In this document: positions 6,425-64,000 of the stretch, one piece after another | How positions within the stretch are numbered: the stretch's first letter is position 1 | How the letters are laid out: every line of letters starts with the position of its first letter | Source of the DNA: Guillardia theta CCMP2712 | Lineage: Eukaryota > Protista > Cryptophyta | DNA length: 64,000 bases | Reading direction: 5' to 3' | Assembly: GCF_000315625.1 (NCBI RefSeq) | Contig: NW_005434513.1 | Location: forward strand, 50,701 to 114,700 | Translations under genes and position numbers: made by a program | Notes under the pieces: model-generated | Databases searched by the model: none | Told to the model about the DNA's origin: nothing | Seen by the model: only the letters and a program-made list of their open reading frames with translations

Positions 6425-6955
6425 TGTAAGTCATCGCTTCTTGTAAGTCATCGCTTCTTGTAAGTCATCGCTTCTTGTAAGTCATCGCTTCTTGTAAGTC
6501 ATCGCTTCTTGTAAGTCATCGCTTCTTGTAAGTCATCGCTTCTTGTAAGTCATCGCTTCTTGTAAGTCATCGCTTCTTGTAAGTCATCGCTTCTTGTAAG
6601 TCATCGCTTCTTGTAAGTCATCGCTTCTTGTAAGTCATCGCTTCTTGTAAGTCATCGCTTCTTGTAAGTCATCGCTTCTTGTAAGTCATCGCTTCTTGTA
6701 AGTCATCGCTTCTTGTAAGTCATCGCTTCTTGTAAGTCATCGCTTCTTGTAAGTCATCGCTTCTTGTAAGTCATCGCTTCTTGTAAGTCATCGCTTCTTG
6801 TAAGTCATCGCTTCTTGTAAGTCATCGCTTCTTGTAAGTCATCGCTTCTTGTAAGTCATCGCTTCTTGTAAGTCATCGCTTCTTGTAAGTCATCGCTTCT
6901 TGTAAGTCATCGCTTCTTGTAAGTCATCGCTTCTTGTAAGTCATCGCTTCTTGTA
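6425..6955. repeat. 17-bp minisatellite (GTAAGTCATCGCTTCTT), about 31 perfect copies
   Basis: Directly visible perfect tandem array. Confidence 0.97.
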
Positions 6956-46715: not shown

Positions 46716-46874
46716 TAGGAAAACTTGAGTGAATATTTACTCAATCATATAGGACTCTGACTATATAACCTCCGGAAGGTCCCGCCTATATAGGTAAATA
46801 TTTACTTAAATTGTTGCTGGAAGGGAAAGGAGCATGCCAGCGCGATGAGTTAGAGGAGGAGTAGGCCGCCTCTG

Positions 46875-47204
46875 AGGACAGAAGCAAACCCCAGCTGTAG
46901 GCGACAGTGAGAGGACAGAAGCAAACCCCAGCTGTAGGCGACAGTGAGAGGACAGAAGCAAACCCCAGCTGTAGGCGACAGTGAGAGGACAGAAGCAAAC
47001 CCCAGCTGTAGGCGACAGTGAGAGGACAGAAGCGAACCCCAGCTGTAGGCGACAGTGAGAGGACAGAAGCGAACCCCAGCTGTAGGCGACAGTGAGAGGA
47101 CAGAAGCAAACCCCAGCTGTAGGCGACAGTGAGAGGACAGAAGCAAACCCCAGCTGTAGGCGACAGTGAGAGGACAGAAGCGAACCCCAGCTGTAGGCGA
47201 CAGT
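46875..47204. repeat. 37-bp minisatellite, 9 copies
   Basis: AGGACAGAAGC(A/G)AACCCCAGCTGTAGGCGACAGTGAG in tandem with no spacers. Confidence 0.95.
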
Positions 47205-47575
47205 GGCGCATCAAGGAGCTTGGACACAATGAAACGCAGGGTCCCCTGTATACTCATCCTTGCTTACAGGGTTTATTTTTGGTGGTACTTTCGGATTATA
47301 GTAGAGTAGGCGTAAAAATGCGTATAGAAGAAGAGGGAGGAGATGAGAGCAGCAGAAAAGAGCAGAAACTCTTGCTGAAAATCGCCAGCTGTCAGGATCT
47401 TGCATGATGAAGTCGTTGCGCATGCTGATGATGAGGGAATGAAAATCACAGGTAGAGGAAAGGAAAGTGATAAGTATTGGGCGAGAGAGATGAAGGGGGT
47501 AGATGAAGACCAGGTGATGATGAGTTGTGGCAGGGAGCTGGGAGCAAACAAGGTGATCGCATGCGAGTCTAGCTC

Positions 47576-49891
47576 ATGTCCCGACTACATATTTGCTTTG
47601 CAACAGCCTGTTTGCTAGGGATGATCGTCACCAGTAGCACTGCTACTCGTCCAATTTCAACTAGTGAGAAATCAAGATCGTCAACTAAGTCTCACAATCA
47701 TTTCTCCAAGCGACCGCGGAGGAGTGCAGATGGATCTTTGGGCTATTCTGCCATGCAGGATCCTTACATCAAATACCTGATGGAAGAGCTTCAGAAATGC
47801 AATGACGAGCGCAAATTTGCGAAACTCAATCTGGAGCTAAAGGCGGCACTAGAAAGGCTGGCGTTGAGGGAAGAGCGTCTGAGGCTTGAGGGGATGATGT
47901 TTACGTGCCAAAACCCGGAAGGGAAGGAGGAGCTAAAGGCGGCACTAGAAAGGCTGGCGGTGAGAGAAGAGTTGATAAGGCATGAGGAGAATTTCAGAGA
48001 AGAGCTAAGGAGGGCTGAACAGAATATGAAAGAAGAGCGTCTGAGGCTTGAGGGGATGATGTTTACGTGCCAAAACCCGGAAGGGAAGGAGGAGCTAAAG
48101 GCGGCACTAGAAAGGCTGGCGTTGAGGGAAGAGCGTCTGAGGCTTGAGGGGATGATGTTTACGTGCCAAAACCCGGAAGGGAAGGAGGAGCTAAAGGCGG
48201 CACTAGAAAAGCTGGCGGTGAGGGAAGAGCGTCTGAGGCTTGAGGGGATGATGTTTACGTGCCAAAACCCGGAAGGGAAGGAGATGCTGATATTGAGATG
48301 GAAGCAATTTGAGAGACAAATTTATCGAACACCAATACAACTATCATCGTTCTTAGCAATCAGGAAGATACCAGAATACAGTAACAATTCCGAGTTTATC
48401 AGGTTTCCAGCCCAGTATCTAAAACTTGCCGGTGTTGGGGAACATTTAGCGGAGAAGGAAAATGATAGCATGGATGCTATGGTATATTGTCGACAGGCAG
48501 TCCAAGAGCAAATGAAATTCATGCAAGAAGCAGTGATGAAGAGAGGTTGCTTTGGATGGGTGAATGGATCGCCAGGGACAGGAAAGTCATTGACGGCTCT
48601 TGCCTTTTGTCTCGGACTTAACAGTAGCGCATGGAATGTTTGCTGGCTTCATTTGTCAATGTTCAATTTACCGGAAGGGCTTCTCAGGAATGAGCAAGGT
48701 GTTCGCGCAGTAAAACTATTAAGATACTCTGATGAAGACATGCTGAGTGGCTTGGGACTGAATGAGTTCAATCGTCCAGGGTTGATCATTCTAGATGGAT
48801 ACCGGAAGACGGAGCGATATGAGTTGCTGATTGAATTACTGAGTGATTGGCGAAATCAAGACAAGAGTATGCGTCGTTTACTTGTTGTGACTTCTATGTC
48901 AGGGAACATTAAAATTCAAGGAGGAGAAGATACTAGACTTGGAATGGAGTTTTTCTTTGTCAATCCATGGACAGAGCAGGAATATCTTTCTGCCATAAAG
49001 TGCAACGAGTTCTACGAATTAGTGAAGGAAAACCTTGATACGGAGATGTTCCTGGAATCTCATGGCAAGAAGAGTGATCGTAGCATCCGTAGGATCAGAA
49101 TTCGATCGAAGTATTTTTATGCTGGAAAGTCATCAAGGTGCATGTTTGCATGGAATACGTCAGAGGTGATAAAACGACTTAGACGAGCCTTGACTGCTGT
49201 CCAAGACTTTGAATCACATATGAGTTCGGGAACGCAGTCTCCAAATTTGATCGACGGCCTGTTCTCAGTAAGAAGAGATGCTGTCAGCCAAAGTGATTGC
49301 CTGACATTTGTCAGTGAATTTGTGGCATTCGAATTTGCCATTCGTATGGGCCCAGACCGATTAAGAAAGTGCGCAGCATTGTTCGAACCAAATGACCCGA
49401 TAATGCAAGGGAAATTTTTCGAAATATTGTTTTTTGCCACGATTGCTGCACAAGACCTTAAGATTTTCTGGAGAGTTGGGGGAAATGGCACAAAAATCTG
49501 GCCTAAAGGTGTGGTCAAGATAGTGTCAAACAATTTCGATCAGACTTTTTTCGATGGGAATGAAAATGGTTTGTGGGCAAAGCCATTGAACTTCAATCAT
49601 CCAGCCTATGATGGTGTTTTTCTGAACAAGACAGATGGATCAGTGCGCTTCGTGCAAGTAACAATCGCCAAAGAGCACTCGTTCAATCTTGCTCCATGTG
49701 CAAAGTTCTTGGAAAAAATGACAAATATCGGCTTCTGCGTCAGAAATGTGGAATTCTACTTCGTTGTGCCTAAAGCACTTGAGCGATTCAAGGTATCAAA
49801 TTTTTCTAATCCTAGCGCATTGACAAACTATGGTTGGGAAAATGGTGCGGAATGGAACAAGATTCAAGTAATAGGCATCGATATCAATTAG
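47576..49891 (+). CDS. Crinkler/RHS (CR)-type protein: signal-like N-terminus, coiled-coil repeats, P-loop NTPase, C-terminal PD-(D/E)xK REase fold
   Basis: Intronless 771-aa ORF. Walker A GSPGTGKS and Walker B LIILDG. G..FE helix (GKFFEILFF) and WAKPLNFNHPAYDGVFL...VRFVQVTIAKEH, the REase motif pattern of CRN/RHS proteins. Four copies of EERLRLEGMMFTCQNPEGKE. Confidence 0.8.
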   Translation: MSRLHICFATACLLGMIVTSSTATRPISTSEKSRSSTKSHNHFSKRPRRSADGSLGYSAMQDPYIKYLMEELQKCNDERKFAKLNLELKAALERLALREERLRLEGMMFTCQNPEGKEELKAALERLAVREELIRHEENFREELRRAEQNMKEERLRLEGMMFTCQNPEGKEELKAALERLALREERLRLEGMMFTCQNPEGKEELKAALEKLAVREERLRLEGMMFTCQNPEGKEMLILRWKQFERQIYRTPIQLSSFLAIRKIPEYSNNSEFIRFPAQYLKLAGVGEHLAEKENDSMDAMVYCRQAVQEQMKFMQEAVMKRGCFGWVNGSPGTGKSLTALAFCLGLNSSAWNVCWLHLSMFNLPEGLLRNEQGVRAVKLLRYSDEDMLSGLGLNEFNRPGLIILDGYRKTERYELLIELLSDWRNQDKSMRRLLVVTSMSGNIKIQGGEDTRLGMEFFFVNPWTEQEYLSAIKCNEFYELVKENLDTEMFLESHGKKSDRSIRRIRIRSKYFYAGKSSRCMFAWNTSEVIKRLRRALTAVQDFESHMSSGTQSPNLIDGLFSVRRDAVSQSDCLTFVSEFVAFEFAIRMGPDRLRKCAALFEPNDPIMQGKFFEILFFATIAAQDLKIFWRVGGNGTKIWPKGVVKIVSNNFDQTFFDGNENGLWAKPLNFNHPAYDGVFLNKTDGSVRFVQVTIAKEHSFNLAPCAKFLEKMTNIGFCVRNVEFYFVVPKALERFKVSNFSNPSALTNYGWENGAEWNKIQVIGIDIN

Positions 49892-50554: not shown

Positions 50555-50760
50555 TCGTTGAAGTCACCTCATTGCCTGCTGTGGCGGTGTATGTCTCGAC
50601 ATTCTGCTTCTTGGCTTCAGCTTCGAGGACCGAAGCATCCACAAGCTCGCTCTGCGTGTATTGGCATGATCTCCGATACAGCATGTTGCCAACGCTCTCA
50701 TCATACTGAAGAACCATACTTAGAAAGCTGTTTGAACTATACCAGAGGGGGCTTTCCTAG
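50555..50760 (-). pseudogene. Degenerate, deleted, inverted relic of the telomere-associated ORF1 family
   Basis: MVLQYDESVGNMLYRRSCQYTQSELVDASVLEAEAKKQNVETYTATAGNEVTS matches the N-termini of ORFs 55103, 57096 and 60844 with an internal deletion. Confidence 0.85.
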
Positions 50761-50920: not shown

Positions 50921-50999
50921 GGCACCGGGCCCCTGACAGAGGCACCGGGCCCCTGACAGAGGCACCGGGCCCCTGACAGAGGCACCGGGCCCCTGACAG
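50921..50999 (+). repeat. 20-bp tandem repeat (GGCACCGGGCCCCTGACAGA)x4, related to the family-B 5' terminus
   Basis: Resembles GGGCCCGTTGACAGAGGCA at 56954-57034. Confidence 0.85.
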
Positions 51000-53162
51000 T
51001 GATATGCTATGCTGCAAATTTCTGGAGGACTGGCGATCGGAGCCTCAGGAAGTCACAAGACGACCTGATCGTCTACTGCAAGGAGTCGGAACAAGAGAGA
51101 ATAATTGTCCAACTCACAGTACACCTGATCCCTGAACAGTCGGAGGAGCTACAAGAGTACCGGAGGAAGAAACATGACAACCCTCAAGCCTCTGCCAAGC
51201 AGGAGAAAAAAAGGAACCAAGTGTGGTCCGCAATTCACGGCGACATATCACGAAACAGGAAGGGTCGATCAATGTCGATAGGATACAGCACGCAAGACAA
51301 GGAAGGAGAACAGGAACGCGGAGCGATCAAGATACACGGAAAATGTAGCGTTATCAGAGCACATACCATCGCACTCTGCATACTCCTACAAGCGATTTGG
51401 GAACAAAGAGGCAAACAAAAAACAATCAGGAAAATCTTCGTCCTCTTTAAATCAACCCGAATGCATCGCTTTCTTACGGACACCCTCAGGTGGTCAACCA
51501 TGCAGTATGAAGATGAGCTCGTGGATGACTTGGCGGGAAGACTGCAGGATTGCCTGATCAAATTTCAGCGGGAAGGCATCGAGATCAACCTCTCCATGAT
51601 TACAGATCACACCGTAGTACAAGAAGCAGCGGAAGAAGCCCGTAAGGCAAAATCCTCCTTCTCCTCCACATGGGAACGAGCCCTCATCGACGGCGACCTG
51701 GGATTCTGCATTGCAGACGAAGAGAACTTCAAGCCTGGTATGGATCGATTGAAGGTCTGGGATAAAATAATCCGAGAAGAACAACTGGAATTGAGGAGGA
51801 AAGAAGCTCCCCTCACCTTGACGGAAACCTTTCTCCTGGAACCACAAGTGGGCAGAAGGATCCTAGGTCGAGCCTTACAGAGGTGTCGCGGATCAGTACT
51901 TCGGACAACTATCCAAGCTATTACCTGGTCAGCACCAACGAGGAAAAAGCTGTTCCAGTGGAAGAAGACGACATCCCCCTGCTGCCCTTGGTGCGAAGGA
52001 AGGGAAGAAAGCTGGGTACATGTTCAGCTAGCCTGCAAGGAATTTGAGCTCATGATTGCTCTGGCACACAACAGAGTAATGGAGACAATCAAGGGATGCC
52101 TGAGAGAAAGCTGGAAGAAGAAAAATATTGAACAGGAGAGTTGGTGGCAAACGCCAATCAACTCTATGACAGGGCTAGGACTGACTGCACCAGCACACGG
52201 CAATCTCATACCGGATGGGCTCTGCTTCTTCAGAGGGAGCAATCGCATTGTACTAGTGGAGATTGCAAGAACTTCAGAATTCACGGGCGAGGGAAGCAGC
52301 CTGGCAAACCTGCAAGCAAAGTTTCAAGAGAAAGAACAGAAATATGCAGCACTGCGGGCAGAGATGACCAGTAGGAGCGACAACACGGAGGTTATACAAG
52401 CCACGTTCATCGCAGGAGTGAGAGGCAGTATTATGGAGCAGGAATGGACCACAAATTTTCAGAACTTGCTTATGGATGAGGATATGATTGACAAAGCTAT
52501 GACCAAGATAGTCATCCAGCTGCTCGAAGTGCAACACATGCTGTGGACCTCAAGGAGAAGAGGAGACACGACTAACAGACAGGAAAGACGGTGAACTACA
52601 ATCAGAAGGTGGAAAGGGAACAGAGGACCAAGGGCAACAGGCCAACGATAGATACAGCGCAGAGAACAAGCGCGAAGGATATGAGAAGGCTGGCAGACGA
52701 CAGGGTAAAGACCAACGAGGACAAATCAAAAGGGAAGCCTCAAAAGCAAGCAACTAGGATCAGCATGGCAGGGAAGGGGAAAGGACACACGAGACAGCTG
52801 GAAGATGACAGGGTAAAGGTCAACGCGGACAGACCGAAGGGGAAGCCCCACAGGCGAAAAAACAGGACCAGCATGGCAGGGAAAGGGCAAGGACTAATTT
52901 TAGCGCAACAAACAGGTGGACGGTTACACTGAAACCGTCGAGCCGGGCCCGGCCGCGGAGGCGCGGCACCGGCGGCTCAAACCGGAGGACCACGGAAACA
53001 ATAGGAACAGCGAAACAGCGATCGAACCCTGGATGCCACAAAGGGCCATCCAAGATGGGCCGCTCTGCCAAGCGTGAGAACCCCTTTAGACTAGAATAGG
53101 CCGGGGAGGTACCCGGTACGACTAACTTCTAGCATTCAAATAAACTCGACTGACTACTACTA
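50999..53162 (+). mobile_element. 3' portion of an RLE-clade non-LTR retrotransposon (RT region missing) ending at telomeric repeats
   Basis: ORF 50999..52594 has a degenerate RNase H-like region, CCHC knuckle CPWC..REESWVHVQLAC, AHNRV (RHN motif), PDGL...IVLVEIA (PD..E) and EKEQKY (K..KY). The 3' UTR has AATAAA and an (ACT)n tail joined to TAGGG. Confidence 0.88.
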
Positions 53163-53207
53163 GGGTTTTTTAGGGTTTAGGGTTTAGGGTTTAGGGTTTA
53201 GGGTTTA
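53161..53207 (+). repeat. Interstitial telomeric tract (TTTAGGG)n no. 1
   Basis: Directly visible. Confidence 0.95.
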
Positions 53208-53525
53208 CAGGCGCCGGTTATTTCAGGCAGGCGCCGGTTATTTCAGGCAGGCAGGCGCCGGTTATTTCAGGCAGGCAGGCGCCGGTTATTTCAGGCAGGC
53301 GCCGGTTATTTCAGGCAGGCGCCGGTTATTTCAGGCAGGCGCCGGTTATTTCAGGCAGGCGCCGGTTATTTCAGGCAGGCGCCGGTTATTTCAGGCAGGC
53401 GCCGGTTATTTCAGGCAGGCGCCGGTTATTTCAGGCAGGCGCCGGTTATTTCAGGCAGGCGCCGGTTATTTCAGGCAGGCGCCGGTTATTTCAGGCAGGC
53501 GCCGGTTATTTCAGGCAGGCGCCGG
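53208..53525 (+). repeat. 20-bp tandem array (GCCGGTTATTTCAGGCAGGC), ~15 copies; variant of the family-A 5' terminus
   Basis: Unit resembles GGCGCCGTTATTTTCGGCA at 60740 and GCGCCGGTTATTCCAGGCA at 63412. Confidence 0.92.
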
Positions 53526-53792
53526 AAGGCTTAGGTCAGAAAGGCTTCGTCGCTGTAGGGGCCAACGTCATCTGGAGACAGAGGGAGGTCGAGTGGATTA
53601 TCTCCTCGAGCTGCCCAGAGGCGAATGATACAGCATTTCGAGCTTTCCGAGAGAGCGAAGCGATGGAGGGAGCATCATCTTCCCTCATCTCCACCCGCAG
53701 TCGGTCCTTCTTGCACATGCATCTCTGCGAATTTACTCCTGGCAGTGCTATGAACAGGAAGCTAAGAGGTCGACGCTCTATGTCGTCGCTCC
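53526..53792. mobile_element. Rearranged family-A remnant: a forward internal piece fused to an inverted 3' piece
   Basis: 53526-53670 matches 56047-56192 (+). 53673-53792 is the reverse complement of about 60066-60203 with small indels. Confidence 0.85.
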
Positions 53793-55021
53793 ATTCTGTA
53801 GGATTTTGGTCAGGTAGGCATATACGGTATCTTGTAGGGTAGTCCCTGGGAATCGAGGGGTGGTTTAGGGATTTCAGTTATTTGTACCAGGTAATTTGAG
53901 ACCTTACGAAATTTATTTGAAATGTTCACTAGAATAATTTTTATATGTCGATAACAGTACAAAATGAAAAATATTTTATTTTGTTGCCTCCTTGTCCTTT
54001 ACCCCTTCCCTGATGCTGGCATAGATGCAAACCATTCTGCTGTGGACCATTGGATGAGAAGCAGCTGAGAGAGACAATGACACAGGTGAATCAGAAGCCC
54101 AACATGCATGTGTGCTGGAAGGCTTGCGACGGATGTGTGATTCGGAAGCTTACACATGTGCTTTGAGTTTTTCAATGAGAGTTTTCCTCCAAAATATTTT
54201 ATTTTGCTGCCTCCTTGTCCTTTGCTGATGTGGACCATTGGATGAGAAGCAGTTGAGAGAGACAATGACACAGAAGGTATCGCAGATATCTGGAAGCCAT
54301 GCAGCCCAATGATCGTTGTGAGAGCATTCAAACGGATAATCTCCGTGTTTCACTTCCCTTGTTACAACACTGCGCGCTGGAGAGTTCACAGATACTCTGC
54401 AGAGATGACTAGCTTCTCAAGAGACTTTCAGATAGAATTCCAGCAAGAAAAGCATGCAGGCTTGATTTTGACATATATATTCCTGGATTCAAATGAATAA
54501 TTGCTCTGTCGCAGAAAATTATTGTTGATGCAAAGCTTGACATCTGACTTGCAGCGAAAAGCAGCACACTTGCTGCTCAGATGCAGAGATGTTAAACCAA
54601 GCTTTATTTGAGAGGACCCTCATCTTTAGTTTAGTAAACTATCATTAAGCTCAAATTCAATCTACCATATTGAGTGGAGGAGGTTATCTAAACATATGGA
54701 AACACACTCTGACAATCTGATTATTACGATCAGAAAATCACAAGTGTTGCATGAATCAGTATCGTAGACCATAAATTTTATAGGAGAACATCCGCTTCGC
54801 ACCTGCCTAGAACATTTAAAATGAGGCTACCTACATCTGATTGATGGTACAATATGCAGCTATGAGGAAAGCTTAACGCATTTGGGAAATTTCCTCAAAT
54901 TTTTCCTGGCCCAAACTTTCTTCATTGTCACGAGTCTTTCCATACCATCTTCGAAGAAGCAACATCCTCTTCATACATTTACATGTGTCCATGCTTCTTC
55001 ATACGTTTGCATGTGTCCATG

Positions 55022-55077
55022 TTTAGGGTTTAGAGTTTAGGGTTTAGGGTTTAGGGTTTAGGGTTTAGGGTTTAGGG
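55022..55077 (+). repeat. Interstitial telomeric tract no. 2
   Basis: Eight TTTAGGG units, one of them the variant TTTAGAG. Confidence 0.95.
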
Positions 55078-56927
55078 CCGTTATTTTCGGCAGCATGGCT
55101 CCTTGCCAGGTGTAGGGGAAGCCGCCAGGGCGCCAAGGAAGCTGCAAGCGAGAGGTTTGTATACTTCAAATAGCTTTCTAAGTATGGTTCTTCAGTATGA
55201 TGAAAATGTTCGCAACCTGCTGTATCGGAGATCATGCCAATACACGCAGAGCGGACTTGTGGATGCCTCTGTCCTCGAAGCTGATCTCGTCGAGAGGGTG
55301 AAGAGCTTCGCGAAGCGTTATCCGAACAGCAGGACAGCCCAGGCTTGCAAGGCTGTGGAGGGATGCACCCCCGACGCTATCGCAGAAGCCATCCGCTCGA
55401 CATGTCAGCAGGCACGACGGGAGCTTCTACAAGAAGCAATGACTGGATGGAGTGACGCATCCAGAGAATGGTTTATGCAGCAGATTGAAGAAGCCAAGAA
55501 GGAGAAGGTCGAGACATACACCGCCTCAGCAGGCAACGAGGTGACTTCCTTCATCTCCATGACTCTCCTGGGCATCTCCTCGGTGTATGTCAACCATGAA
55601 GAGAAGTTGAAGAAGAAATTCGAAGAGATCGGACTGATCGTAGACTCAGTGCAAGAGAGTAAAGCAATCATGTGGAAGGCTCCGTATAGACCCGAGATAG
55701 CGAGTGCTGAGGAGATCCCGGTGACTGTTTCCTTCCTCCGCAATGCACAAGCGGAGAAGCTCTGGCAGGGAAGAGAGGACTTCGCGATCGATGGTCGCAA
55801 GTTCACAGCTGTACATGTGAGCATCGTGCACGATAGATCTTTCAAGATTCGAGCCAAGAGAGGACCCCGGGGGCAAAGGGGGCAGCTTGGCAGAGCTGAC
55901 CCACCTGCTAACCTTGGGCGGCATGACAACGGCTGAGATAGCTGCCGTCTATCGCTATCAGCTGCTGCGCCAGTCCCTTGCAGCGGTCCAACTCCAGCCG
56001 CTGGCAGGCATGCTGGTCGCTGGGGCGCCAGGACAGCAAGTCCACAAAGGCTTAGGTCAGAAAGGCTTCGTCGCTGTAGGGGCCAACGTCATCTGGAGAC
56101 AGAGGGAGGTGGAGTGGATCGTCTCCTCGAGCTGCCCAGAGGCGAATGATACAGCATTTCGAGCTTTCCGAGAGAGCGAAGCGATGGAGGGAGTACACCT
56201 GACTCTGTTCAGCGAGGACCCGAAGATCAGAGAGGCGCTCGCAGTCGAGTTGACAGCTGATCGCTTTGTGTCCAGAAATAAGTTGAAGAAGGCATCAAGG
56301 ATGCAGAAGAAGGCAGGCGGCAAGGACGGCAAGGAGATCAAGATCATCATCAAGTCGACGGCGGCATCTGGTCGCTTCACGAGGAAGGAGATGGAGGGGC
56401 TGTGCAACGGCGGCAACACGTCCATCGCAAGAGTCAAGAGAGTCCTTAACAGGCTCGAGATCAAAGTTGAAGGCATCGACATGGAGGAGGATTTGAACAC
56501 CAAGTCCTGGAACGGGTCCAAGCTATGCATCCTCCTCGGCTCCACGGAGGATGCTCGATGCATGATGAAGCAGCTGCCCTTCTCTCTAGAAGGCGCAGCA
56601 ACCAAGCTCGAAGCAGTCGGCTTCGACAAGGAGCCTGAGGCGGCTGGTCAGCGGGGCACCAGCGACGCAGCGCAGCGACAGGAGGAGAGCGAGGGAGAGT
56701 GGCTGGAGTTTACAGACCTGGAGAGGATCACAATGGAGCAGCATCTCCGTCAAGCCAAGAGGACATGCAGCTCGTCAGCGAGCTGTCAGCAGTCATCGAA
56801 GATGCAACTTCTTTGAACGAGGCGGGGACGAGCGAGCCGATCAAGCTGGTCCTGGACAAGGCCGTTGGCAACCTCCACGACACCTTCTACTCTCCGGGGA
56901 GCCTGGAGTTCATGTCGCTGGGAGAGT
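55077..56927 (+). mobile_element. Family-A ORF1-only element, copy 1 (frameshifted, 3'-truncated, capped by TTTAGGG)
   Basis: Near-identical to 60760-62620. ORF pieces 55103..55936, 55887..56816 and 56699..56938. Ends GGGAGAGT|TTAGGG. Confidence 0.85.
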
Positions 56928-56954
56928 TTAGGGTTTAGGGTTTAGGGTTTAGGG
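56927..56954 (+). repeat. Interstitial telomeric tract no. 3
   Basis: Four TTTAGGG units. Confidence 0.95.
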
Positions 56955-57122
56955 GGCCCGTTGACAGAGGCAGGGCCCGTTGACAGAGGCATGCTGCTCT
57001 GTGGCGCGTAGGGAGGGGCCCGTTGACAGAGGCATGCTGCTCTGTGGCGCGTAGGGAGAGCGCAAGGGCACCGGAGGAAGCTGCGAGCAAGAGGTTTGTG
57101 CAGTTCAAACAGCTTTCTAAGT

Positions 57123-59270
57123 ATGGTACTACAGTATGATGAGAGCGTTCGCAACCTGCTGTATCGGAGATCATGCCAATACACGCAGGGTGAGCGCTCA
57201 GGAGGCCACGTCGAGGAGGCCGACCTCGTCGAGAGAGTGAAGAGCTTCACCAAGCGTTATCCGAATAGTCGGACAGCTCATGCTTGCAGAGCTGAGGGGG
57301 GATGCACTCCCGACGCTATCGCAGAAGCCATCCGCTCGACATGTCGGCAGGCGAGACGCGACCTGTTTGAAGACTCTCTGAGCGCATGGAGCCCAGAGTC
57401 GAAAGCATGGTTCATGCAACAGATGAAAGAGGCCAAACAGCAGAATGTCGAGACTTACATCGGCACCGAAGACACCGAGGAGACCTCCTTCATCTCCATG
57501 ACTCTCCTGGGCATCTCCTCGATGTATGTGCGACAAGAAGACAAATTGAAAATGAAGTTGACGGAGCTGGGACTCATAGTAGACTCAGTCGATAGAGACG
57601 ACAAGTCCATCATGTGGAAAGCACCTTACAGACCTGAGATAGCACGAGCAGACGACATCTCAGTCACCATCTCCTTCCTTCGGAATGAAGAAGCCATCGC
57701 ACTCTGGCAAGGCAGCAGAGAGTACAGCATCGACGGGCGAATTTTCAGAGCAACTGAAGTCAGCATTGCACACGACCGGTCGTTCAAGCTCCGAGCCAAG
57801 CGAGGACCTTGGGGCAAGGGAGGGAGCCTTGCCGAGCTATCGCAGCTCCTAGCTCTTGGAGGAATGTCGACGGCGGACATAGCTCGGATCTATCAATTCC
57901 AACTGATCTCGCAATGTCTCGCCGCAGCAGAGGTACAACCGCTGGCGGGCATGCTCGTGCAGGGTGCTGGGCAGAGAGGTCGCAAGGGGCCGAGCCCGAA
58001 GACGTATGTTGCTGTTGGAGCAAGCACCGGAGCTCTGCAGCAGAGAGAGCTCGAGTGGGTACTATCCTGCCCATCGACGGCCAGCTGCGAGCAGACGTTG
58101 GCCTCGTTCAGAGAGAGCGAGGCGATGGAGGGGGTGCACCTGACTCTCGTCAGCGACGACGCCAAGCTCAGAGAGACGTTTGCAGTCGAGCTCACAGCAG
58201 ACACCTTCGTGCCGAGAGGAAAGATTGCCAAGCAGAGGAAGGTACTTCGCGACAGGGAGCAGGCTCCAAGCGGCAGCTTCAGGGTGCAGATCAAGTCGAA
58301 GTCAAGCATGAGCACAGGCCGCTTCTCGAGGAAGGAGATGGAAGCACTGTGCGGAGGAGGTAACACATCGACCACGCGAGTCAAGCGAGCCATGTTGGAA
58401 TTAGCAAGAAGAATGAACCTGAAGCTTGCCAGCATTGAGGTTCAAGAAGATCGAGACACGCTGAGCTGGGATGGGAGCCTGATAACTCTCTCCCTGGCGA
58501 CCAAGGCAGAGGCTCGACGTCTGATGGAAGACATCCCCTTCTACTTGGAAGGGGTCCTGGAAGTCAAGCTGGAAGCTGTGGGTTTCAAGTGGAGCTCTCA
58601 GGATGAAGAGGAGAGCGAGGAGCAGGCTCAGGAGCCCCAAGGGCAGCAGCAAGGCGCTGGATGGCTGGAGCTCAGCGACATCGACAGGATTACTCTGGAG
58701 GCGGCCTCGCCGTCAGGACCAGTCGACCAGCAGGTCTTGGTCGACCTCTCGACGATGCTCCTGGAGACGTCAGAGGAGGATCTACTTGCTGGCAAGCCGA
58801 TCCCGCTGGAGCTAGACAAGAGTGTCGGCAAGCTGCATGACACCTTCTACTCGCCGGGCAACGTGGAGTTCATGACGCTCGGAGCTTGGGCAGCCACGCC
58901 GTCGTTGGGATCGAAGCGCAACATGTTGAAGGAAAAGCTGAGAGCGTACCTGGGCAAGCAGCGCTGGACTCAGGTACAGGGGAACAAGAAGCAGAAACAA
59001 GCAGCGAGGAGGGGCAGCGCTTTCTCTCCAAGAGCAGCAGCAACTGATGCGCTTGAGCAGGAGGCTGAGAGCGATGACATCGAGAGTCGATCTGTGAGCC
59101 TCTTGTTTCTTGCGATCAGTAAATTTGCTGAAAACCAAGGCCTGAAATGCACGGGCAAGGTCGACAAGCGAGACCGACTGCGGCTGATGCTGAAGGAAGA
59201 AGTCGACATGGAAGCTGAGGAGGGCGAGGGCGTGGAGGAGGAGGCTGGCGCAGGCCTCTCGCGCGCTTGA
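57123..59270 (+). CDS. Family-B ORF1-like protein (~715 aa from MVLQY), an intact diverged paralog of the family-A ORF; possible RRM-like domains and acidic tail
   Basis: Uninterrupted intronless ORF 57096..59270, colinear with the family-A ORF with many substitutions. No RT (YxDD) or nuclease motif seen. The element starts at ~56954, right after the telomeric tract. Confidence 0.8.
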   Translation: MVLQYDESVRNLLYRRSCQYTQGERSGGHVEEADLVERVKSFTKRYPNSRTAHACRAEGGCTPDAIAEAIRSTCRQARRDLFEDSLSAWSPESKAWFMQQMKEAKQQNVETYIGTEDTEETSFISMTLLGISSMYVRQEDKLKMKLTELGLIVDSVDRDDKSIMWKAPYRPEIARADDISVTISFLRNEEAIALWQGSREYSIDGRIFRATEVSIAHDRSFKLRAKRGPWGKGGSLAELSQLLALGGMSTADIARIYQFQLISQCLAAAEVQPLAGMLVQGAGQRGRKGPSPKTYVAVGASTGALQQRELEWVLSCPSTASCEQTLASFRESEAMEGVHLTLVSDDAKLRETFAVELTADTFVPRGKIAKQRKVLRDREQAPSGSFRVQIKSKSSMSTGRFSRKEMEALCGGGNTSTTRVKRAMLELARRMNLKLASIEVQEDRDTLSWDGSLITLSLATKAEARRLMEDIPFYLEGVLEVKLEAVGFKWSSQDEEESEEQAQEPQGQQQGAGWLELSDIDRITLEAASPSGPVDQQVLVDLSTMLLETSEEDLLAGKPIPLELDKSVGKLHDTFYSPGNVEFMTLGAWAATPSLGSKRNMLKEKLRAYLGKQRWTQVQGNKKQKQAARRGSAFSPRAAATDALEQEAESDDIESRSVSLLFLAISKFAENQGLKCTGKVDKRDRLRLMLKEEVDMEAEEGEGVEEEAGAGLSRA

Positions 59271-59538
59271 GTCTTAGAGGTGGACAAGAGGCGGAGCGGA
59301 GCTGTGGGCCCCAAGGGGGGAAGGAGGAAGAAATAAATGAGGTGGACACGGGGCAAGCAACGAAGGTAAGGCAGGTAAGCCGGTGGGGGAGGGGGGAGGG
59401 GGGGGCGGGGGGGGAGGAGGCCGGGCGGCGACCGGCCGGGCTTTCGGGCCCGGTCGTGACCGAGGCCCGGGGGAAGGGACGTGAGTCCCAGGGACTCATC
59501 CACAACCCACTGCCACCTCACCCATCATCCACTCACCG

Positions 59539-60702
59539 GCCCTTCTATCTCGAAGGCGCAGCAACCAAGCTCGAAGCAGTCGGCTTCGACAAGGAGCCTG
59601 AGGCGGCTGGTCAGCGGGGCACCAGCGACGCAGCGCAGCGACAGGAGGAGAGCGAGGGAGAGTGGCTGGAGTTTACAGACCTGGAGAGGATCACAATGGA
59701 GGCAGCATCTCCGTCAAGCCAAGAGGACATGCAGCTCGTCAGCGAGCTGTCAGCAGTCATCGAAGATGCAGCTTCTTTGAACGAGGCAGGGACGAGCGAG
59801 CCGATCAAGCTGGTCCTGGACAAGGCCGTTGGCAACCTCCACGACACCTTCTACTCTCCGGGGAGCCTGGAGTTCATGTCGCTGGGAGAGTGGGCGAAGA
59901 CGCCAGAGGAGCAGGGAGTTGGGCGCAACGTTCTCAAGGAGAAGCTGGGGAAGTGGCTGCAGAGCAAGCGCTGGACTCGCGTGCAAGGAGAGAACAAGAA
60001 GGCAAGGAGGGGCAGCGCGTTCTCGCCACGGGCAACGGCAGCTGCTGAGCTTGAGCAGGAGGCGGAGAGCGACGACATAGAGCGTCGATCTCTTAGCTTC
60101 CTGTTCATAGCACTGAGTAAATTCGCAGAGATGCATGTGCTGGCCTGCTCGCTGAAGGTGGACAAGAAGGACCGACTGCGAGTGGAGATGAGGGAAGATG
60201 ACGAAGAAGAGGAAGACATGGAGGAAGAGCAAGGCGAGGGCGAGGAAGAAGACAGGGCGAGCCCGTACCGAGCTTGAGCTGAGCTCAAGGTAAGGAGAGA
60301 AGGTAGGAGGCGACCGAAGGCCAAGGTGAGGAGAGGCAACTCTCCTGACTGAGGCTGAGGAAGCTGAATGGAGGAGGAGTAGGTGGCGACCGAAGGCCAA
60401 GGTGAGGAGAGGCAACTCTTCTGACTGAGGCTGAGGAAGCTGAATGGAGGTAGAGTAGGTGGCGACCGAAGGCCAAGGTGAGGAGAGGCAACTCTCCTGA
60501 CTGAGGCTGAGGAAGCCAAGAGAAGACAGAAGAAGTAGAAAGTAGAAAGACGCCTCAGAAGCAGGGTTCGCATTGTAGGCCGTGTACTCCCAGTGCTCGC
60601 GCGCCTCTTTAGACTAGGATCAAATTGCATAAGCCCACAACGAGGCCGAGCAACATTCTAGCATTCTAATAAACTCACATAATAATAATAATAATAATAA
60701 TA
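59539..60702 (+). mobile_element. Family-A element, copy 2 (5'-truncated, complete 3' end with (TAA)n tail)
   Basis: Matches 62270-63403. ORF stop at 60277, then 76-bp UTR repeats, AATAAA at 60668 and an (ATA)n tail joined to TAGGG. Confidence 0.88.
60309..60515 (+). repeat. 76-bp 3'-UTR tandem repeat (~2.7 copies) with an AGGAGAG-GCAA-CTCTCCT hairpin; second occurrence at about 63043-63245
   Basis: CGACCGAAGG at 60311, 60387 and 60463. Confidence 0.9.
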
Positions 60703-60738
60703 GGGTTTAGGGTTTAGGGTTTAGGTTTAGGGTTTAGG
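60701..60738 (+). repeat. Interstitial telomeric tract no. 4
   Basis: TAGGG(TTTAGGG)n with TTTAGG variants. Confidence 0.95.
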
Positions 60739-63404
60739 AGGCGCCGTTATTTTCGGCACAGGCGCCGTTATTTTCGGCAGCATGGCTCCTCGTCAGGTGT
60801 AGGGGAAGCCGCCAGGGCGCCAAGGAAGCTGCAAGCAAGAGGTTTGTATACTTCAAATAGCTTTCTAAGTATGGTTCTTCAGTATGATGAAAATGTTCGC
60901 AACCTGCTGTATCGGAGATCATGCCAATACACGCAGAGCGGACTTGTGGATGCCTCTGTCCTCGAAGCTGATCTCGTCGAGAGAGTGAAGAGCTTCGCGA
61001 AGCGTTATCCGAACAGCAGGACAGCCCAGGCTTGCAAGGCTGTGGAGGGATGCACCCCCGACGCTATCGCAGAAGCCATCCGCTCGACATGTCAGCAGGC
61101 ACGACGTGAGCTTCTGCAAGAAGCGATGACTGGATGGAGTGACGCATCCAGAGAGTGGTTTATGCAGCAGATTGAAGAAGCCAAGAAGGAGAAGGTCGAG
61201 ACATACACCGCCTCAGCAGGCAACGAGGTGACTCCCTTCATCTCCATGACTCTCCTGGGCATCTCCTCGGTGTATGTCAACCATGAAGAGAAGCTGAAGA
61301 AGAAATTCGAAGAGATCGGACTGATCGTAGACTCAGTGCAAGAGAGTAAAGCAATCATGTGGAAGGCTCCGTATAGACCCGAGATAGCGAGTGCTGAGGA
61401 GATCCCGGTGACTGTTTCCTTCCTCCGCAATGCACAAGCGGAGAAGCTCTGGCAGGGAAGAGAGGACTTCGCGATCGATGGTCGCAAGTTCACAGCTGTA
61501 CATGTGAGCATCGTGCACGATCGATCTTTCAAGATTCGAGCCAAGAGAGGACCCTGGGGCAAAGGGGGCAGCTTGGCAGAGCTGACTCACCTGCTAACCT
61601 TGGGCGGCATGACAACGGCTGAGATAGCTGCCGTCTATCGCTATCAGCTGCTGCGCCAGTCCCTTGCAGCGGTCCAACTCCAGCCGCTGGCAGGCATGCT
61701 GGTCGCTGGGGCGCCAGGCCAGCAAGTCCACAAAGGCTTAGGTCAGAAAGGCTTCGTCGCTGTAGGGGCCAACGTCATCTGGAGACAGAGGGAGGTGGAG
61801 TGGATCGTCTCCTCGAGCTGCCCAGAGGCGAATGATACAGCATTTCGAGCTTTCCGAGAGAGCGAAGCGATGGAGGGAGTACACCTGACTCTGTTCAGCG
61901 AGGACCCGAAGATCAGAGAGGCGCTCGCAGTCGAGTTGACAGCTGATCGCTTTGTCTCTAGGAATAAGTTGAAGAATCAAGACTGCAGAAGAAGGCAGGC
62001 GGCAAGGACGGCAAGGAGATCAAGATCATCATCAAGTCGACGGCGGCATCTGGTCGCTTCACGAGGAAGGAGATGGAGGGGCTGTGCAACGGCGGCAACA
62101 CGTCCATCGCAAGAGTCAAGAGAGTCTTGTTGGAGATCGCTAACAGGCTCGAGATCAAAGTTGAAGGCATCGACATGGAGGAGGATTTGAACACTAAGTC
62201 TTGGAACGGGTCCAAGCTATGCATCCTCCTCGGCTCCACGGAGGATGCTCGACGCATGATGAAGGAGCTGCCCTTCTATCTCGAAGGCGCAGCAACCAAG
62301 CTCGAAGCAGTCGGCTTCGACAAGGAGCCTGAGGCGGCTGGTCAGCGGGGCCGCACCAGCGACGCAGCGCAGCGACAGGAGGAGAGCGAGGGAGAGTGGC
62401 TGGAGTTTACAGACCTGGAGAGGATCACAATGGAGGCAGCATCTCCGTCAAGCCAAGAGGACATGCAGCTCGTCAGCGAGCTGTCAGCAGTCATCGAAGA
62501 TGCAGCTTCTTTGAACGAGGCAGGGACGAGCGAGCCGATCAAGCTGGTCCTGGACAAGGCCGTTGGCAACCTCCACGACACCTTCTACTCTCCGGGGAGC
62601 CTGGAGTTCATGTCGCTGGGAGAGTGGGCGAAGATGCCAGAGGAGCAGGGAGTTGGGCGCAACGTTCTCAAGGAGAAGCTGGGGAAGTGGCTGCAGAGCA
62701 AGCGCTGGACTCGCGTGCAAGGAGAGAGCAAGAAGGCAAGGAGGGGCAGCGCGTTCTCGCCACGGGCAACGGCAGCTGCTGAGCTTGAGCAGGAGGCGGA
62801 GAGCGACGACATAGAGCGTCGATCTCTTAGCTTCCTGTTCATAGCACTGAGTAAATTCGCAGAGATGCATGTGCTGGCCTGCTCGCTGAAGGTGGACAAG
62901 AAGGACCGACTGCGAGTGGAGATGAGGGAAGATGACGAAGAAGAGGAAGACATGGAGGAAGAGCAAGGCGAGGGCGAGGAAGAAGACAGGGCGAGCCCGT
63001 ACCGAGCTTGAGCTGAGCTCAAGGTAAGGAGAGAAGGTAGGAGGCGACCGAAGGCCAAGGTGAGGAGAGGCAACTCTCCTGACTGAGGCTGAGGAAGCTG
63101 AATGGAGGAGGAGTAGGTGGCGACCGAAGGCCAAGGTGAGGAGAGGCAACTCTCCTGACTGAGGCTGAGGAAGCTGAATGGAGGTAGAGTAGGTGGTGAC
63201 CGAAGGCCAAGGTGAGGAGAGGCAACTCTCCTGACTGAGGCTGAGCAAGCCAAGAGAAGACAGCAGAAGTAGAAAGTAGAAAGACGCCTCAGAAGCAGGG
63301 TTCGCATCGTAGGCCGTGTACTCCCAGTGCTCGAGCGCCTCTTTAGACTAGGATCAAATTGCATAAGCCCACAACGAGGCCGAGCAACATTCTAGCATTC
63401 TAAT
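60739..63404 (+). mobile_element. Family-A ORF1-only element, copy 3 (near full length, ~2.67 kb; one frameshift near 61976)
   Basis: 5' motif x2, ATG 60871 (MVLQY), ORFs 60844..62190 and 62073..63011, then the 3' UTR with the conserved terminal motif. There is no room for an RT ORF. Confidence 0.88.
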
Positions 63405-63544
63405 CCAGGCAGCGCCGGTTATTCCAGGCAGCGCCGGTTATTCCAGGCAGCGCCGGTTATTCCAGGCAGCGCCGGTTATTCCAGGCAGCGCCGGTTATTC
63501 CAGGCAGCGCCGGTTATTCCAGGCAGCGCCGGTTATTCCAGGCA
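63405..63544 (+). repeat. 19-bp tandem array (CCAGGCAGCGCCGGTTATT), ~7 copies, forming the 5' end of copy 4
   Basis: Directly visible. Runs into GGCACCATGGCT, the element leader. Confidence 0.92.
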
Positions 63545-64000
63545 CCATGGCTGCACGCGTGGTGTAGGGGAAGCTGCCAGGGCGCCAAGGAAGCTGCAAG
63601 CGAGAGGTTTGTATACTTCAAATAGCTTTCTAAGTATGGTTCTTCAGTATGATGAAAATGTTCGCAACCTGCTGTATCGGAGATCATGCCAATACACGCA
63701 GAGCGGACTTGTGGATGCCTCTGTCCTCGAAGCTGATCTCGTCGAGAGGGTGAAGAGCTTCGCGAAGCGTTATCCGAACAGCAGGACAGCCCAGGCTTGC
63801 AAGGCTGTGGAGGGATGCACCCCCGACGCTATCGCAGAAGCCATCCGCTCGACATGTCAGCAGGCACGACGTGAGCTTCTACAAGAAGCGATGGCTGGAT
63901 GGAGTGACGCATCCAGAGAGTGGTTTATGCAGCAGATTGAAGAAGCCAAGAAGGAGAAGGTCGAGACATACACCGCCTCAGCAGGCAACGAGGTGACTCC
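63405..64000 (+). mobile_element. Family-A element, copy 4 (runs off the window end)
   Basis: ATG 63636 (MVLQYDENVRNLLYRRSCQ), near-identical to copies 1 and 3. Confidence 0.88.

Follow-up and report, generated by a model that had tools for sequence, protein, structure and literature searches.

The stretch analysed here is a window of 64,000 nucleotides (nt) from the cryptophyte Guillardia theta CCMP2712 (contig NW_005434513.1 of assembly GCF_000315625.1), and its position 64000 is the end of that contig, designated C161. From 50.56 to 64.0 kb the window is a head-to-tail array of retrotransposons that carries four TTTAGGG tracts and reaches the contig end; to the left of 50560 no telomeric or element-like sequence was seen in the window. 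The window holds 13 instances of the doubled telomere unit, TTTAGGGTTTAGGG, every one of them on the + strand and after 53169, and 100 shuffles gave none. The elements are a copy of a long interspersed nuclear element (LINE) of a subfamily referred to as LINE-1, and copies of two families, A and B, which encode a single protein (ORF1, for open reading frame 1). Every large element piece lies on the + strand, the direction of the G-rich strand, and since that strand reads toward the contig end, the chromosome tip is on the right and the 3' ends of the large elements face outward. From these and the genome-wide observations below we conclude, with a probability of roughly 85%, that this end of a G. 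theta chromosome has been built by telomere-repeat-specific LINEs of the Dualen type together with ORF1-only partners.

We surveyed the junctions between elements and telomere repeats at 80 distinct telomere tracts of 17-485 bp (median 43 bp). All 29 distinct intact 3' ends joined the repeats at TA/GGG (the slash marks the junction) after a (TAA)n or (CTA)n tail, and all were co-oriented with the G-strand. The intact 3' ends of family A read ...AAACTCACA(TAA)n TA/GGGTTTAGGG without exception, with n of 3-9 and with downstream tracts of very different length. Of the 80 5' junctions, 35 read TTTAGG/AGGC. The same junctions were present in an environmental contig (L063) and in a Hanusia-like contig (L065). 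The fixed register combined with variable tails and tracts indicates independent insertions, not one duplicated segment, and a fixed register in one orientation is what characterizes telomere-repeat-specific LINEs of the SART1/TRAS1 class. Elements that had been cut at their 3' side met the telomere repeats in mixed registers, which is what de novo telomere addition (telomerase healing) would give. At one locus (L027:1295-1375, identical to L028:4150-4230) two family B-type 5' units stand alone between two telomere tracts; this stub is an element that was almost wholly eroded and then healed.

The placement of the copies in the genome agreed with the junctions. Each of the 18 minus-strand family A copies measuring 1.8 kb or more lay no farther than 11 kb from coordinate 1 of the contig concerned, and the plus-strand copies lay at right-hand contig ends (C161, C29, C157, C33, C45, C83, C134, C435, C15, and C19). 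LINE-1 and a second autonomous LINE, LINE-2, were placed in the same pattern. An earlier reading of the window, made from its letters alone and called here the original prediction, had proposed a telomere-repeat-targeted LINE with a reverse transcriptase (RT) and RT-less, protein-coding partners. That core held, given the common 3' end described below, the single register and the position at scaffold ends. So did its forecast that junctions would fall at TA/GGG near scaffold ends, and the identical junctions that it had named as a sign of segmental duplication did not occur, as tail and tract lengths varied. Its picture of co-oriented elements separated by four short tracts was right for the tracts and for the large pieces, and wrong for a family A fragment at 50562-50742, which is inverted.

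The map of the array (Table 1) was built from TRF, a list of ORFs, direct reading and self-comparison with blastn. The window LINE lacks ORF1 because it is 5'-truncated, and it is capped by repeats of a 20-nt unit type that also heads family B copies elsewhere in the genome. The stretch 53208-53791 is a rearranged element remnant. The dispersed repeat that follows has 10 other copies (96-98% identity) on other contigs, away from contig ends, most of which span the whole query, and at its right end in the window telomere repeats are joined to it directly. At 56927 the sequence ...GGGAGAG is followed by TTTAGGG, such that the third tract is joined straight onto ORF sequence, and the join of family B to family A at 59538/59539 is a chimeric junction with no telomere tract.

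Table 1. Features of the array at the contig end (window coordinates; UTR, untranslated region; RLE, restriction-like endonuclease; L061, a metagenome contig with a whole LINE-1 copy).
Feature	Position	Strand	Basis and details
Inverted family A 5'-region fragments, inner edge of the array	50562-50742	-	blastn to family A 399-455 and 68-193, 91-93% identity
Four 20-nt repeats (family B-type 5' unit) capping the truncated LINE	50921-50999	+	TRF period 20, 4.0 copies, 100% match
LINE-1 subfamily copy, 5'-truncated	51000-53162	+	87% nt identity to L061:8141-10298; ORF2 C-terminal 531 codons 50999-52594, CCHC ~51980-52036, RLE core ~52190-52480; 3' UTR, hairpin motif 53086-53147, (CTA)3 tail 53154-53162
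Telomere tract 1	53163-53207	+	
15.5 copies of a 20-nt 5' repeat	53208-53525	+	TRF
Family A internal fragment	53526-53672	+	self-comparison
Family A fragment, inverted	53675-53791	-	self-comparison
AT-rich 1.2-kb piece of an unrelated dispersed repeat	53792-55020	.	10 further genome copies
Telomere tract 2	55021-55077	+	
Family A copy, 5' end complete, cut in ORF1	55078-56927	+	family A 1-1847, 97% identity
Telomere tract 3, added de novo to the broken element	56926-56954	+	
Family B ORF1-only element	56954-59538	+	intact 715-aa ORF1 57123-59270, partial 3' UTR; 5' units of 19 nt x2 and 43 nt x2 at 56954-57058
5'-truncated family A 3' part	59539-60702	+	99% identity to 62270-63404; 76-nt UTR repeats 60294-60516, 3' hairpin 60609-60676, (TAA)n tail 60678-60702
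Telomere tract 4	60701-60738	+	
Full-length family A element	60739-63404	+	2,666-nt unit; 5' unit x2 at 60739-60779, ORF1 from ATG 60871 to stop 63011, 76-nt UTR repeats 63028-63250; ORF1 frameshifted by a 4-nt deletion near 61975, where contigs from other runs hold four extra letters; 3' end cut 6 nt short of the usual end, no telomere tract at the 63404 junction
7.4 copies of a 19-nt 5' repeat, then a family A-type 5' part cut by the contig end	63404-64000	+	

The original prediction had noted a 3' signature common to family A and the LINE. This signature is present at both sites (53084-53165 and 60607-60705) and recurred in every family examined. When the variants were folded singly, seven of eight, two of them from the environmental contig, formed one extended hairpin on a common base helix (z -1.6 to -4.1). 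Its closing helix pairs UUAGA with UCUAA; next come a CAU bulge, in place of which a sixth pair may occur, and a helix of CUAG with CUAG. The apex, always paired, is unrelated in sequence among the families. The hairpin is followed by an unpaired UAAUAAA(C/A)UC and by a (UAA)n or (CUA)n tail. Between two LINE-2-type variants one helix stayed paired through a change from G-C to A-U, and in the window LINE copy the closing helix is mutated (UCAAA). RNAalifold gave no common pairing for seven 3' ends aligned with MAFFT, the variable apices being unalignable. The end of LINE-2, ...CTAATAAACTCAAA(TAA)n, agreed with family A in 24 of its final 25 nt and has the same tail type, and thus fits the 3' end of family A better than the window LINE does. 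The hairpin base of family A (CUAG...CUAGCAU) is of the LINE-1 form. We propose the 3' module as a putative recognition module for the RT.

Family A has a unit of 2,666 nt, with at least 39 genome copies that cover more than 1.9 kb at 96-100% identity. Its ORF was intact (715 aa) in 24 of the 29 copies fetched, and among 666 candidates there were 62 scored matches to it at 97-100% identity, of which 60 had no stop codon. The protein is 100% identical to annotated GUITHDRAFT models of Guillardia theta CCMP2712. Pfam recognized no domain in the family A and B proteins, hence no RT or endonuclease, and the copies and intact frames likewise bear out the description of family A as an element of about 2.7 kb with one protein of about 715 aa. 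Family B has 69-71% nucleotide identity and 59% protein identity to family A, and the ORF1 of the window copy has 89% amino-acid identity to GUITHDRAFT_109521.

In an exhaustive profile-free search of 1.84 billion representative proteins, only 46 relatives of the family A protein were found. Among these, the family A protein aligned over its full length with the ORF1 protein of LINE-1 (P0049; E 3.9e-77, 30-32% identity), and the A and B proteins were 30-33% identical, again over the full length, to the ORF1 proteins of LINE-1 and LINE-2 types. The original prediction had seen no similarity between the LINE and family A beyond the 3' signature, which does not apply to full LINE copies, as they have this homologous ORF1. 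Another protein, P0016, was first read as the LINE's own ORF1, and its position on C39 showed it to belong to a separate family B element ahead of a truncated LINE. A HeT-A-like partner, by our working definition, has an ORF1 homologous to that of an autonomous element, no RT or endonuclease, and a 3' module in common with the autonomous element; family A has the first two, and the module it has in common consists of the hairpin base, UAAUAAA(C/A)UC and the triplet tail.

Maximum-likelihood analysis of ORF1 proteins put families A and B together with Hanusia phi sequences and apart from three LINE-linked ORF1s, with support of 100/100 for the split. The Hanusia-like contig L065 (2,349 nt) begins GTTTAGG/AGGCC and holds only a 688-aa ORF1 and a GA-rich UTR. 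The ratio of nonsynonymous to synonymous divergence (dN/dS) between families A and B was 0.24 (dS 1.2), and ORF1 of these families is under purifying selection. The separate clade with Hanusia and the low dN/dS indicate that the RT-less lineage is old and selected, and no recent deletion derivative of either LINE. A LINE with an A-like ORF1, outside the present sample, may be an alternative relative of the partners.

AlphaFold modelled the family A protein as a series of alpha/beta modules. Foldseek placed Prp24, a protein with four RNA recognition motifs (RRMs), at the top (E 3e-5), followed by many tandem-RRM proteins, and residues 381-485 superposed on single RRMs with Z of 7.0-7.6 and a root-mean-square deviation of 2.3-3.0 A over 77-85 residues; ACT domains scored similarly against the same residues. 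This is moderate evidence that the modelled protein is an RRM-like nucleic-acid-binding protein, as are other LINE ORF1 proteins.

The complete form of the LINE was obtained from other copies. The fragment matched about 20 other genome copies, with 93-94% identity to a subfamily on C17, C63, and C305. About 1.7 kb upstream of the fragment matches there were RVT_1 matches in open frames of 2,482-2,504 aa, and at C15, C7, C64, and C176 an apurinic/apyrimidinic-type endonuclease (APE; PF03372, Exo_endo_phos) and the RT (PF00078) share such frames. Whole LINE-1 copies were read from two independent metagenome contigs, L061 and L062, which had 97-99.9% identity to the G. theta genome pieces compared; domain coordinates in the genome were located by search. 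Full LINE copies are 10.4-10.8 kb, with reiterated units of 18-21 nt in a block at the 5' end. In L061 and L062, LINE-1 consists of 21-nt 5' repeats, an ORF1 of 701 aa, ORF2, the 3' hairpin motif and a (CTA)n tail, after which TTTAGGG repeats follow. ORF2 of L061 (2,481 aa) has APE at 428-611, RT at 1146-1399 and a zinc finger at 2261-2298. In the genome, P0049 lies just ahead of ORF2 (C15:1036385-1038472), and in L005 it is directly downstream of a family A copy.

The C-terminal part of ORF2 is the part that survives in the window, where Pfam matched zf-RVT. In its last 271 residues the Cx2Cx8Hx4C, PD, E, and K columns were invariant against relatives at 52-55% identity. The predicted fold of the RLE part (window 51779-52591) had its best Foldseek match in R2Tg (9dou_A; E 1e-3, probability 1.0, TM 0.49), with the R2 proteins 9nl3 and 8gh6 (Bombyx R2) and then viral PD-(D/E)xK cap-snatching nucleases behind it. 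Comparison of the region with solved structures by sequence, single or profile, returned nothing relevant, so that the fold comparison alone gave a match. The C-terminus of the LINE is thus predicted to be a CCHC finger and an R2-like endonuclease of the PD-(D/E)xK, restriction-like kind. For the RT, in turn, R2 was nearest among solved structures by sequence (1.5e-23), followed by L1 ORF2p.

LINE-2 is a second autonomous lineage. In its environmental copy (L063), ORF1 is 713 aa long and ORF2, at 2,575 aa, holds C48, APE, RT, and CCHC; the lineage is also found in L066. G. theta has about 25 LINE-2 copies at contig ends, pointing outward, with open frames of up to 2,261 aa and their own ORF1 directly upstream. 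Judging from these domains, both LINE-1 and LINE-2 have the Dualen/RandI layout, in which APE, RT, CCHC, and RLE share one ORF. The original prediction, which had called the LINE an RLE-clade element, had seen the half that survives in the window, and the full-length element with RT and RLE that it asked to be rebuilt was read directly in L061 and L062. At the last conserved APE motif (about residue 650 of L061 ORF2, by pairwise alignment) LINE-1 reads KLDAV and LINE-2 KLDHV; LINE-1 may therefore be without the catalytic histidine of APE-type nucleases.

The 5' ends have a structure of their own. The 5' tandem unit is always the element's own first 18-43 nt, in 0 to 40 copies. Within a copy the unit is uniform, and between copies its length and boundary vary (18, 19, 20, 21, 26, 37, and 43 nt). 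One truncated copy was informative: in L045 a LINE-1 truncated at position 8791 starts, after a telomere tract, with five copies of its new first 20-27 nt, and this sequence is single-copy in the full element (L061). The identity of the units with the first nucleotides of the element, along with L045, indicates that the repeats are made at whatever 5' end is present during integration, and we infer that they arise by the RT re-copying the end of its template. Other truncated copies were joined directly to telomere repeats, carried the 5' units of another family (as does the window LINE) or were fused to ORF1-family sequence.

Fusions of the last kind were seen at L046 (C96:289357-290527), L051, L043, and L053, where ORF1 sequence of family A or B is joined in sense to a LINE-1 3' part; the join in L046 keeps an open frame into the RLE. 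Such chimeras suggest template switching between co-packaged RNAs, and template switching may also have been the origin of ORF1-only elements.

To examine transcription, raw reads of a 2026 RNA-seq run with the same species label were aligned to window positions 57000-62999. More than 99% of the 4,527 aligned reads ran in one direction. Depth was greatest over the 3' UTR of family A (60200-60700, up to 260x), with another peak at 61000-61400, and family B was weakly covered; coverage was patchy, as in a 3'-biased library, and levels are not comparable between elements. Thirty-one reads had untemplated runs of A after 61364 (+ strand), about 12-17 nt downstream of an AGTAAA hexamer and inside the ORF1 of family A. 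These pure-A loose ends identify the transcribed direction as the sense strand, and they point to premature polyadenylation of part of the family A transcripts. MMETSP transcripts of G. theta cover the ORF1 of LINE-1 (in the P0049 cluster). A transcriptome protein, P0013, from the EukProt data of the dinoflagellate Heterocapsa arctica, had 100% identity to the family A ORF1 over 461 aa and clustered with a G. theta model. It is likeliest to be G. theta RNA in a dinoflagellate data set (prey or cross-contamination), and as such is further evidence for transcription of family A.

From the observed anatomy, junction registers, copy variation, homology, selection, and transcription we infer a cycle in which the cutting nuclease, mobilisation in trans and 5' reiteration would act as follows. 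An element endonuclease would nick the C-rich strand of a double-stranded telomere tract, and the freed 3' end (...CCCTA or ...CCC) would prime reverse transcription on the triplet tail of an RNA selected by its hairpin. Priming on the triplet tail would leave intact copies ending ...TA/GGGTTTAGGG with the 3' end toward the chromosome tip. Because the elements are in sense with the G-strand and their tails stand directly against GGG, the primer must be a 3' end in the C-strand of a duplex tract, as in SART1, and cannot be the chromosome's G-strand end, as in HeT-A. The original prediction gave the nick to the RLE, and the APE may be the one to make it instead. Either the tail or a C-strand nicked at CCCTA/AA could have supplied the junction's TA, and a nick at CCC/TAAA would fit equally; the 5' junction TTTAGG/A would imply an offset of 2 nt (plus 7n) between the two cuts. 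ORF1-only RNAs, coated by their own ORF1 protein, would be copied in trans by the ORF2 protein of a LINE. The 5' tandem repeats would arise where the RT, on reaching the 5' end of the RNA, copies the terminal 18-43 nt again, with the number of rounds varying. Erosion would then shorten the outermost copy from its 3' side, telomerase would heal it, and the next insertion would target the tract so added.

Several elements of this system have counterparts elsewhere. Cryptophyte Dualens with SET, C48 peptidase, APE, RT, RNase H, CCHC, and RLE have been published, and the layout of SET, C48, and RT has been called unique to them (PMC5029228); RNase H has been reported for Dualen (PMC4640811, PMC5029228). 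The G. theta LINEs agree with Dualen in having APE upstream of the RT and CCHC and RLE downstream, in one long ORF. The C48 of LINE-2 is also as in cryptophyte Dualens, and the nearest long RT relatives carry C48, or SET, C48, and RT, the SET and C48 combination being found in the more distant ones. The published Dualens differ in having no reported telomere specificity, and the Chlamydomonas element inserts at dispersed sites with very long target duplications. A separate ORF1, ORF1-only partners, triplet-repeat tails, and reiterated 5' ends set the G. theta elements apart. In one survey, LINE/Dualen elements were expanded in all cryptophytes except G. theta (PMC12747079).

In SART1 the 3' end is followed by the G-strand repeat, the same orientation as in the G. 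theta elements. SART1 and TRAS1 of Bombyx mori (SART1: PMC7265360) also have a telomerase-made repeat as their target, one register and orientation, and a 3' UTR structure for template choice, and they too coexist with telomerase. They are R1-clade elements with an APE-type nuclease, whereas the G. theta LINEs are Dualens with two nucleases, have no poly(A) in their DNA copies and are accompanied by abundant ORF1-only partners.

The Drosophila elements HeT-A, TART, and TAHRE include a Gag/ORF1-only element that far outnumbers the RT-coding elements it depends on, and they form head-to-tail terminal arrays; both the ORF1-only majority and the arrays are also seen in G. theta. The fly elements attach to the bare chromosome end with their 3' end toward the centromere and replace telomerase. 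This mode was not found in G. theta, where the 3' ends face outward and precede TTTAGGG, the copies keep one register inside TTTAGGG tracts, and telomere repeats heal those that have been broken.

MoTeR1 and MoTeR2 of Magnaporthe oryzae are an autonomous and non-autonomous pair, arranged head-to-tail in telomere repeats with short tracts between them; MoTeR1 has an RT of the CRE/SLACS type with REL-ENDO only, and MoTeR2 has both MoTeR1 termini and a 786-bp insert of no obvious function (PMC7367193). Variable-number short 5' repeats and truncation followed by de novo telomere addition are features that MoTeRs and the G. theta elements have in common (PMC7367193). In MoTeRs it is the 5' end that becomes truncated, and their orientation is opposite to that in G. 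theta. A partner of the MoTeR2 type, with both termini in common and no conserved coding, was not found: in G. theta the 5' units differ by family, and the partners encode a conserved 715-aa protein and have only the 3' module in common with the LINE. Protist and algal LINEs in tandem at chromosome ends are also known from Giardia (GilM/GilT, with an RLE) and Chlorella (Zepp). We know of no protein-coding RT-less partner or dual-endonuclease ORF2 in these systems.

A number of points weigh against the conclusion that telomere-specific Dualens and ORF1-only partners built this end. The mobiliser of family A is ambiguous, as its hairpin base fits LINE-1 and its last 25 nt and (TAA)n tail fit LINE-2. 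Pfam gave no RNase H match at E <= 0.1 in ORF2 of L061 or L063. The AlphaFold model of the RLE has low confidence (pLDDT 55, core 60-80), and that of the family A protein, with a mean pLDDT of 68.7 and Z below 8, provides middling fold evidence. Reiteration at a truncated 5' end was seen in one case, L045, and in no other of the examined loci that were scanned for it. No new insertion was observed, and activity is deduced from 98% copy identity, intact ORFs, and RNA. DNA runs gave unitigs of only 84-195 nt, and the long-range order of the contig is without independent confirmation. Finally, the rearranged or chimeric parts of the array (50562-50742, 53526-53791, and the 59538/59539 join) indicate that recombination or template switching also shapes such arrays.

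A bolder version of this reading would be that telomerase and a long-lived consortium of retroelements jointly build the chromosome ends of Guillardia and Hanusia. The ancient ORF1-only lineage would supply an abundant RRM-type protein acting at the telomere, and the Dualen RT would re-copy a short terminal template many times in a telomerase-like manner, as the source of the 18-43-nt 5' units in up to 40 copies. We consider this unlikely; if true, it would represent a living intermediate between telomerase-based and retrotransposon-based maintenance of chromosome ends.

The non-canonical junctions, including the inverted pieces at 50562-50742 and 53675-53791, the fusion of B to A and the chimeras of A or B with LINE sequence elsewhere, could also be taken to mean that the arrays are relics spread mainly by recombination (break-induced replication, unequal exchange, or segmental duplication), with the ORF1-only units as amplified subtelomeric repeats. 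Some neighbouring structures do recur on one contig (L027/L028), and MoTeR arrays are known to expand by break-induced replication (PMC7367193). Nevertheless, we regard this as very unlikely, for recombination cannot yield a fixed register together with variable tails, and in G. theta the tail, tract, number of 5' repeats, and unit boundary vary by copy while the register does not. An ORF1 intact in 60 of 62 copies, a dN/dS of 0.24, sense-strand RNA, and intact ORF2s of 2,500 aa also weigh against it.

Purifying selection, presence at some 50 contig ends, good transcription, and an ORF1-only clade that is old, common to Hanusia phi and apart from both LINE ORF1 lineages might instead reflect domestication, in which the RRM-like protein or the arrays protect chromosome ends and host selection keeps the ORFs. 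This seems to us highly improbable: the same selection is expected of a protein acting in cis on its own RNA, the conserved hairpin of the putative RT-recognition module, the tail, and the fixed register argue for retroelements that are still mobile, and with new telomere tracts still forming and able to heal copies that break, no replacement of telomerase is needed. That the array was misassembled, as might happen at a repeat-rich scaffold end of the Sanger era, is hardly credible, even though the contig ends inside a repeat and short-read unitigs cannot bridge the elements, as the order of element, tract, and element recurs at dozens of contig ends and the same organisation is present in the independent metagenome assemblies L061, L062, L063, and L066.

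Cryptophyte Dualens, telomere-specific LINEs, and autonomous/non-autonomous telomeric pairs in other organisms were already known. What is new here is the shared 3' hairpin, LINE-2 with its family A-matching tail, strand-specific family A RNA, and 5' tandem repeats of the element's own sequence. In the literature on cryptophyte and Guillardia telomeric retrotransposons and on Dualen, we found no Dualen with telomere targeting (Repbase and many subscription papers were outside the scope), and in that on telomeric retrotransposons and Dualen, no G. theta chromosome ends built in this way and no protist ORF1-only telomeric partner. To our knowledge, Drosophila is the only case in which telomere-specific retrotransposons and an RT-less but protein-coding partner have been described in detail, and there the elements take the place of telomerase. 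In a cryptophyte, which is only distantly related to flies and continues to make TTTAGGG repeats, a similar sharing of tasks would now be seen, as a second, independent case of the long-term persistence of Gag/ORF1-only elements. Dualen is also the only LINE group that we know to have both ancestral endonuclease types, and the G. theta system is a natural test of which nuclease sets Dualen target specificity. The 5' repeats hint at a possible reiterative-copying activity of a LINE RT, and the arrays let one read how rounds of insertion, erosion, and healing have followed one another at chromosome ends. In practical terms, the element families explain many scaffold ends of the G. theta reference and dozens of its "hypothetical protein" gene models.

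Three further observations concern the element sequences in other data and the remainder of the window. Freshwater, lake, and runoff metagenomes from six studies (X10-X12, X14, X18, and X19) contained 42-45% of the 31-mers of 56800-62799, unexpected for a marine alga; this could reflect close freshwater relatives with near-identical elements, or contamination. Just inside the array, at 47576-49891, there is a 771-codon open frame with only weak P-loop/NPHP3_N-like Pfam matches, and tandem repeats of 37 nt (x9) and 96 nt (x2.6) at 46874-47205 and 48032-48283 flank or lie within it. At 6425-6955 there is a 17-nt tandem repeat of 31 copies that is unrelated to the array.

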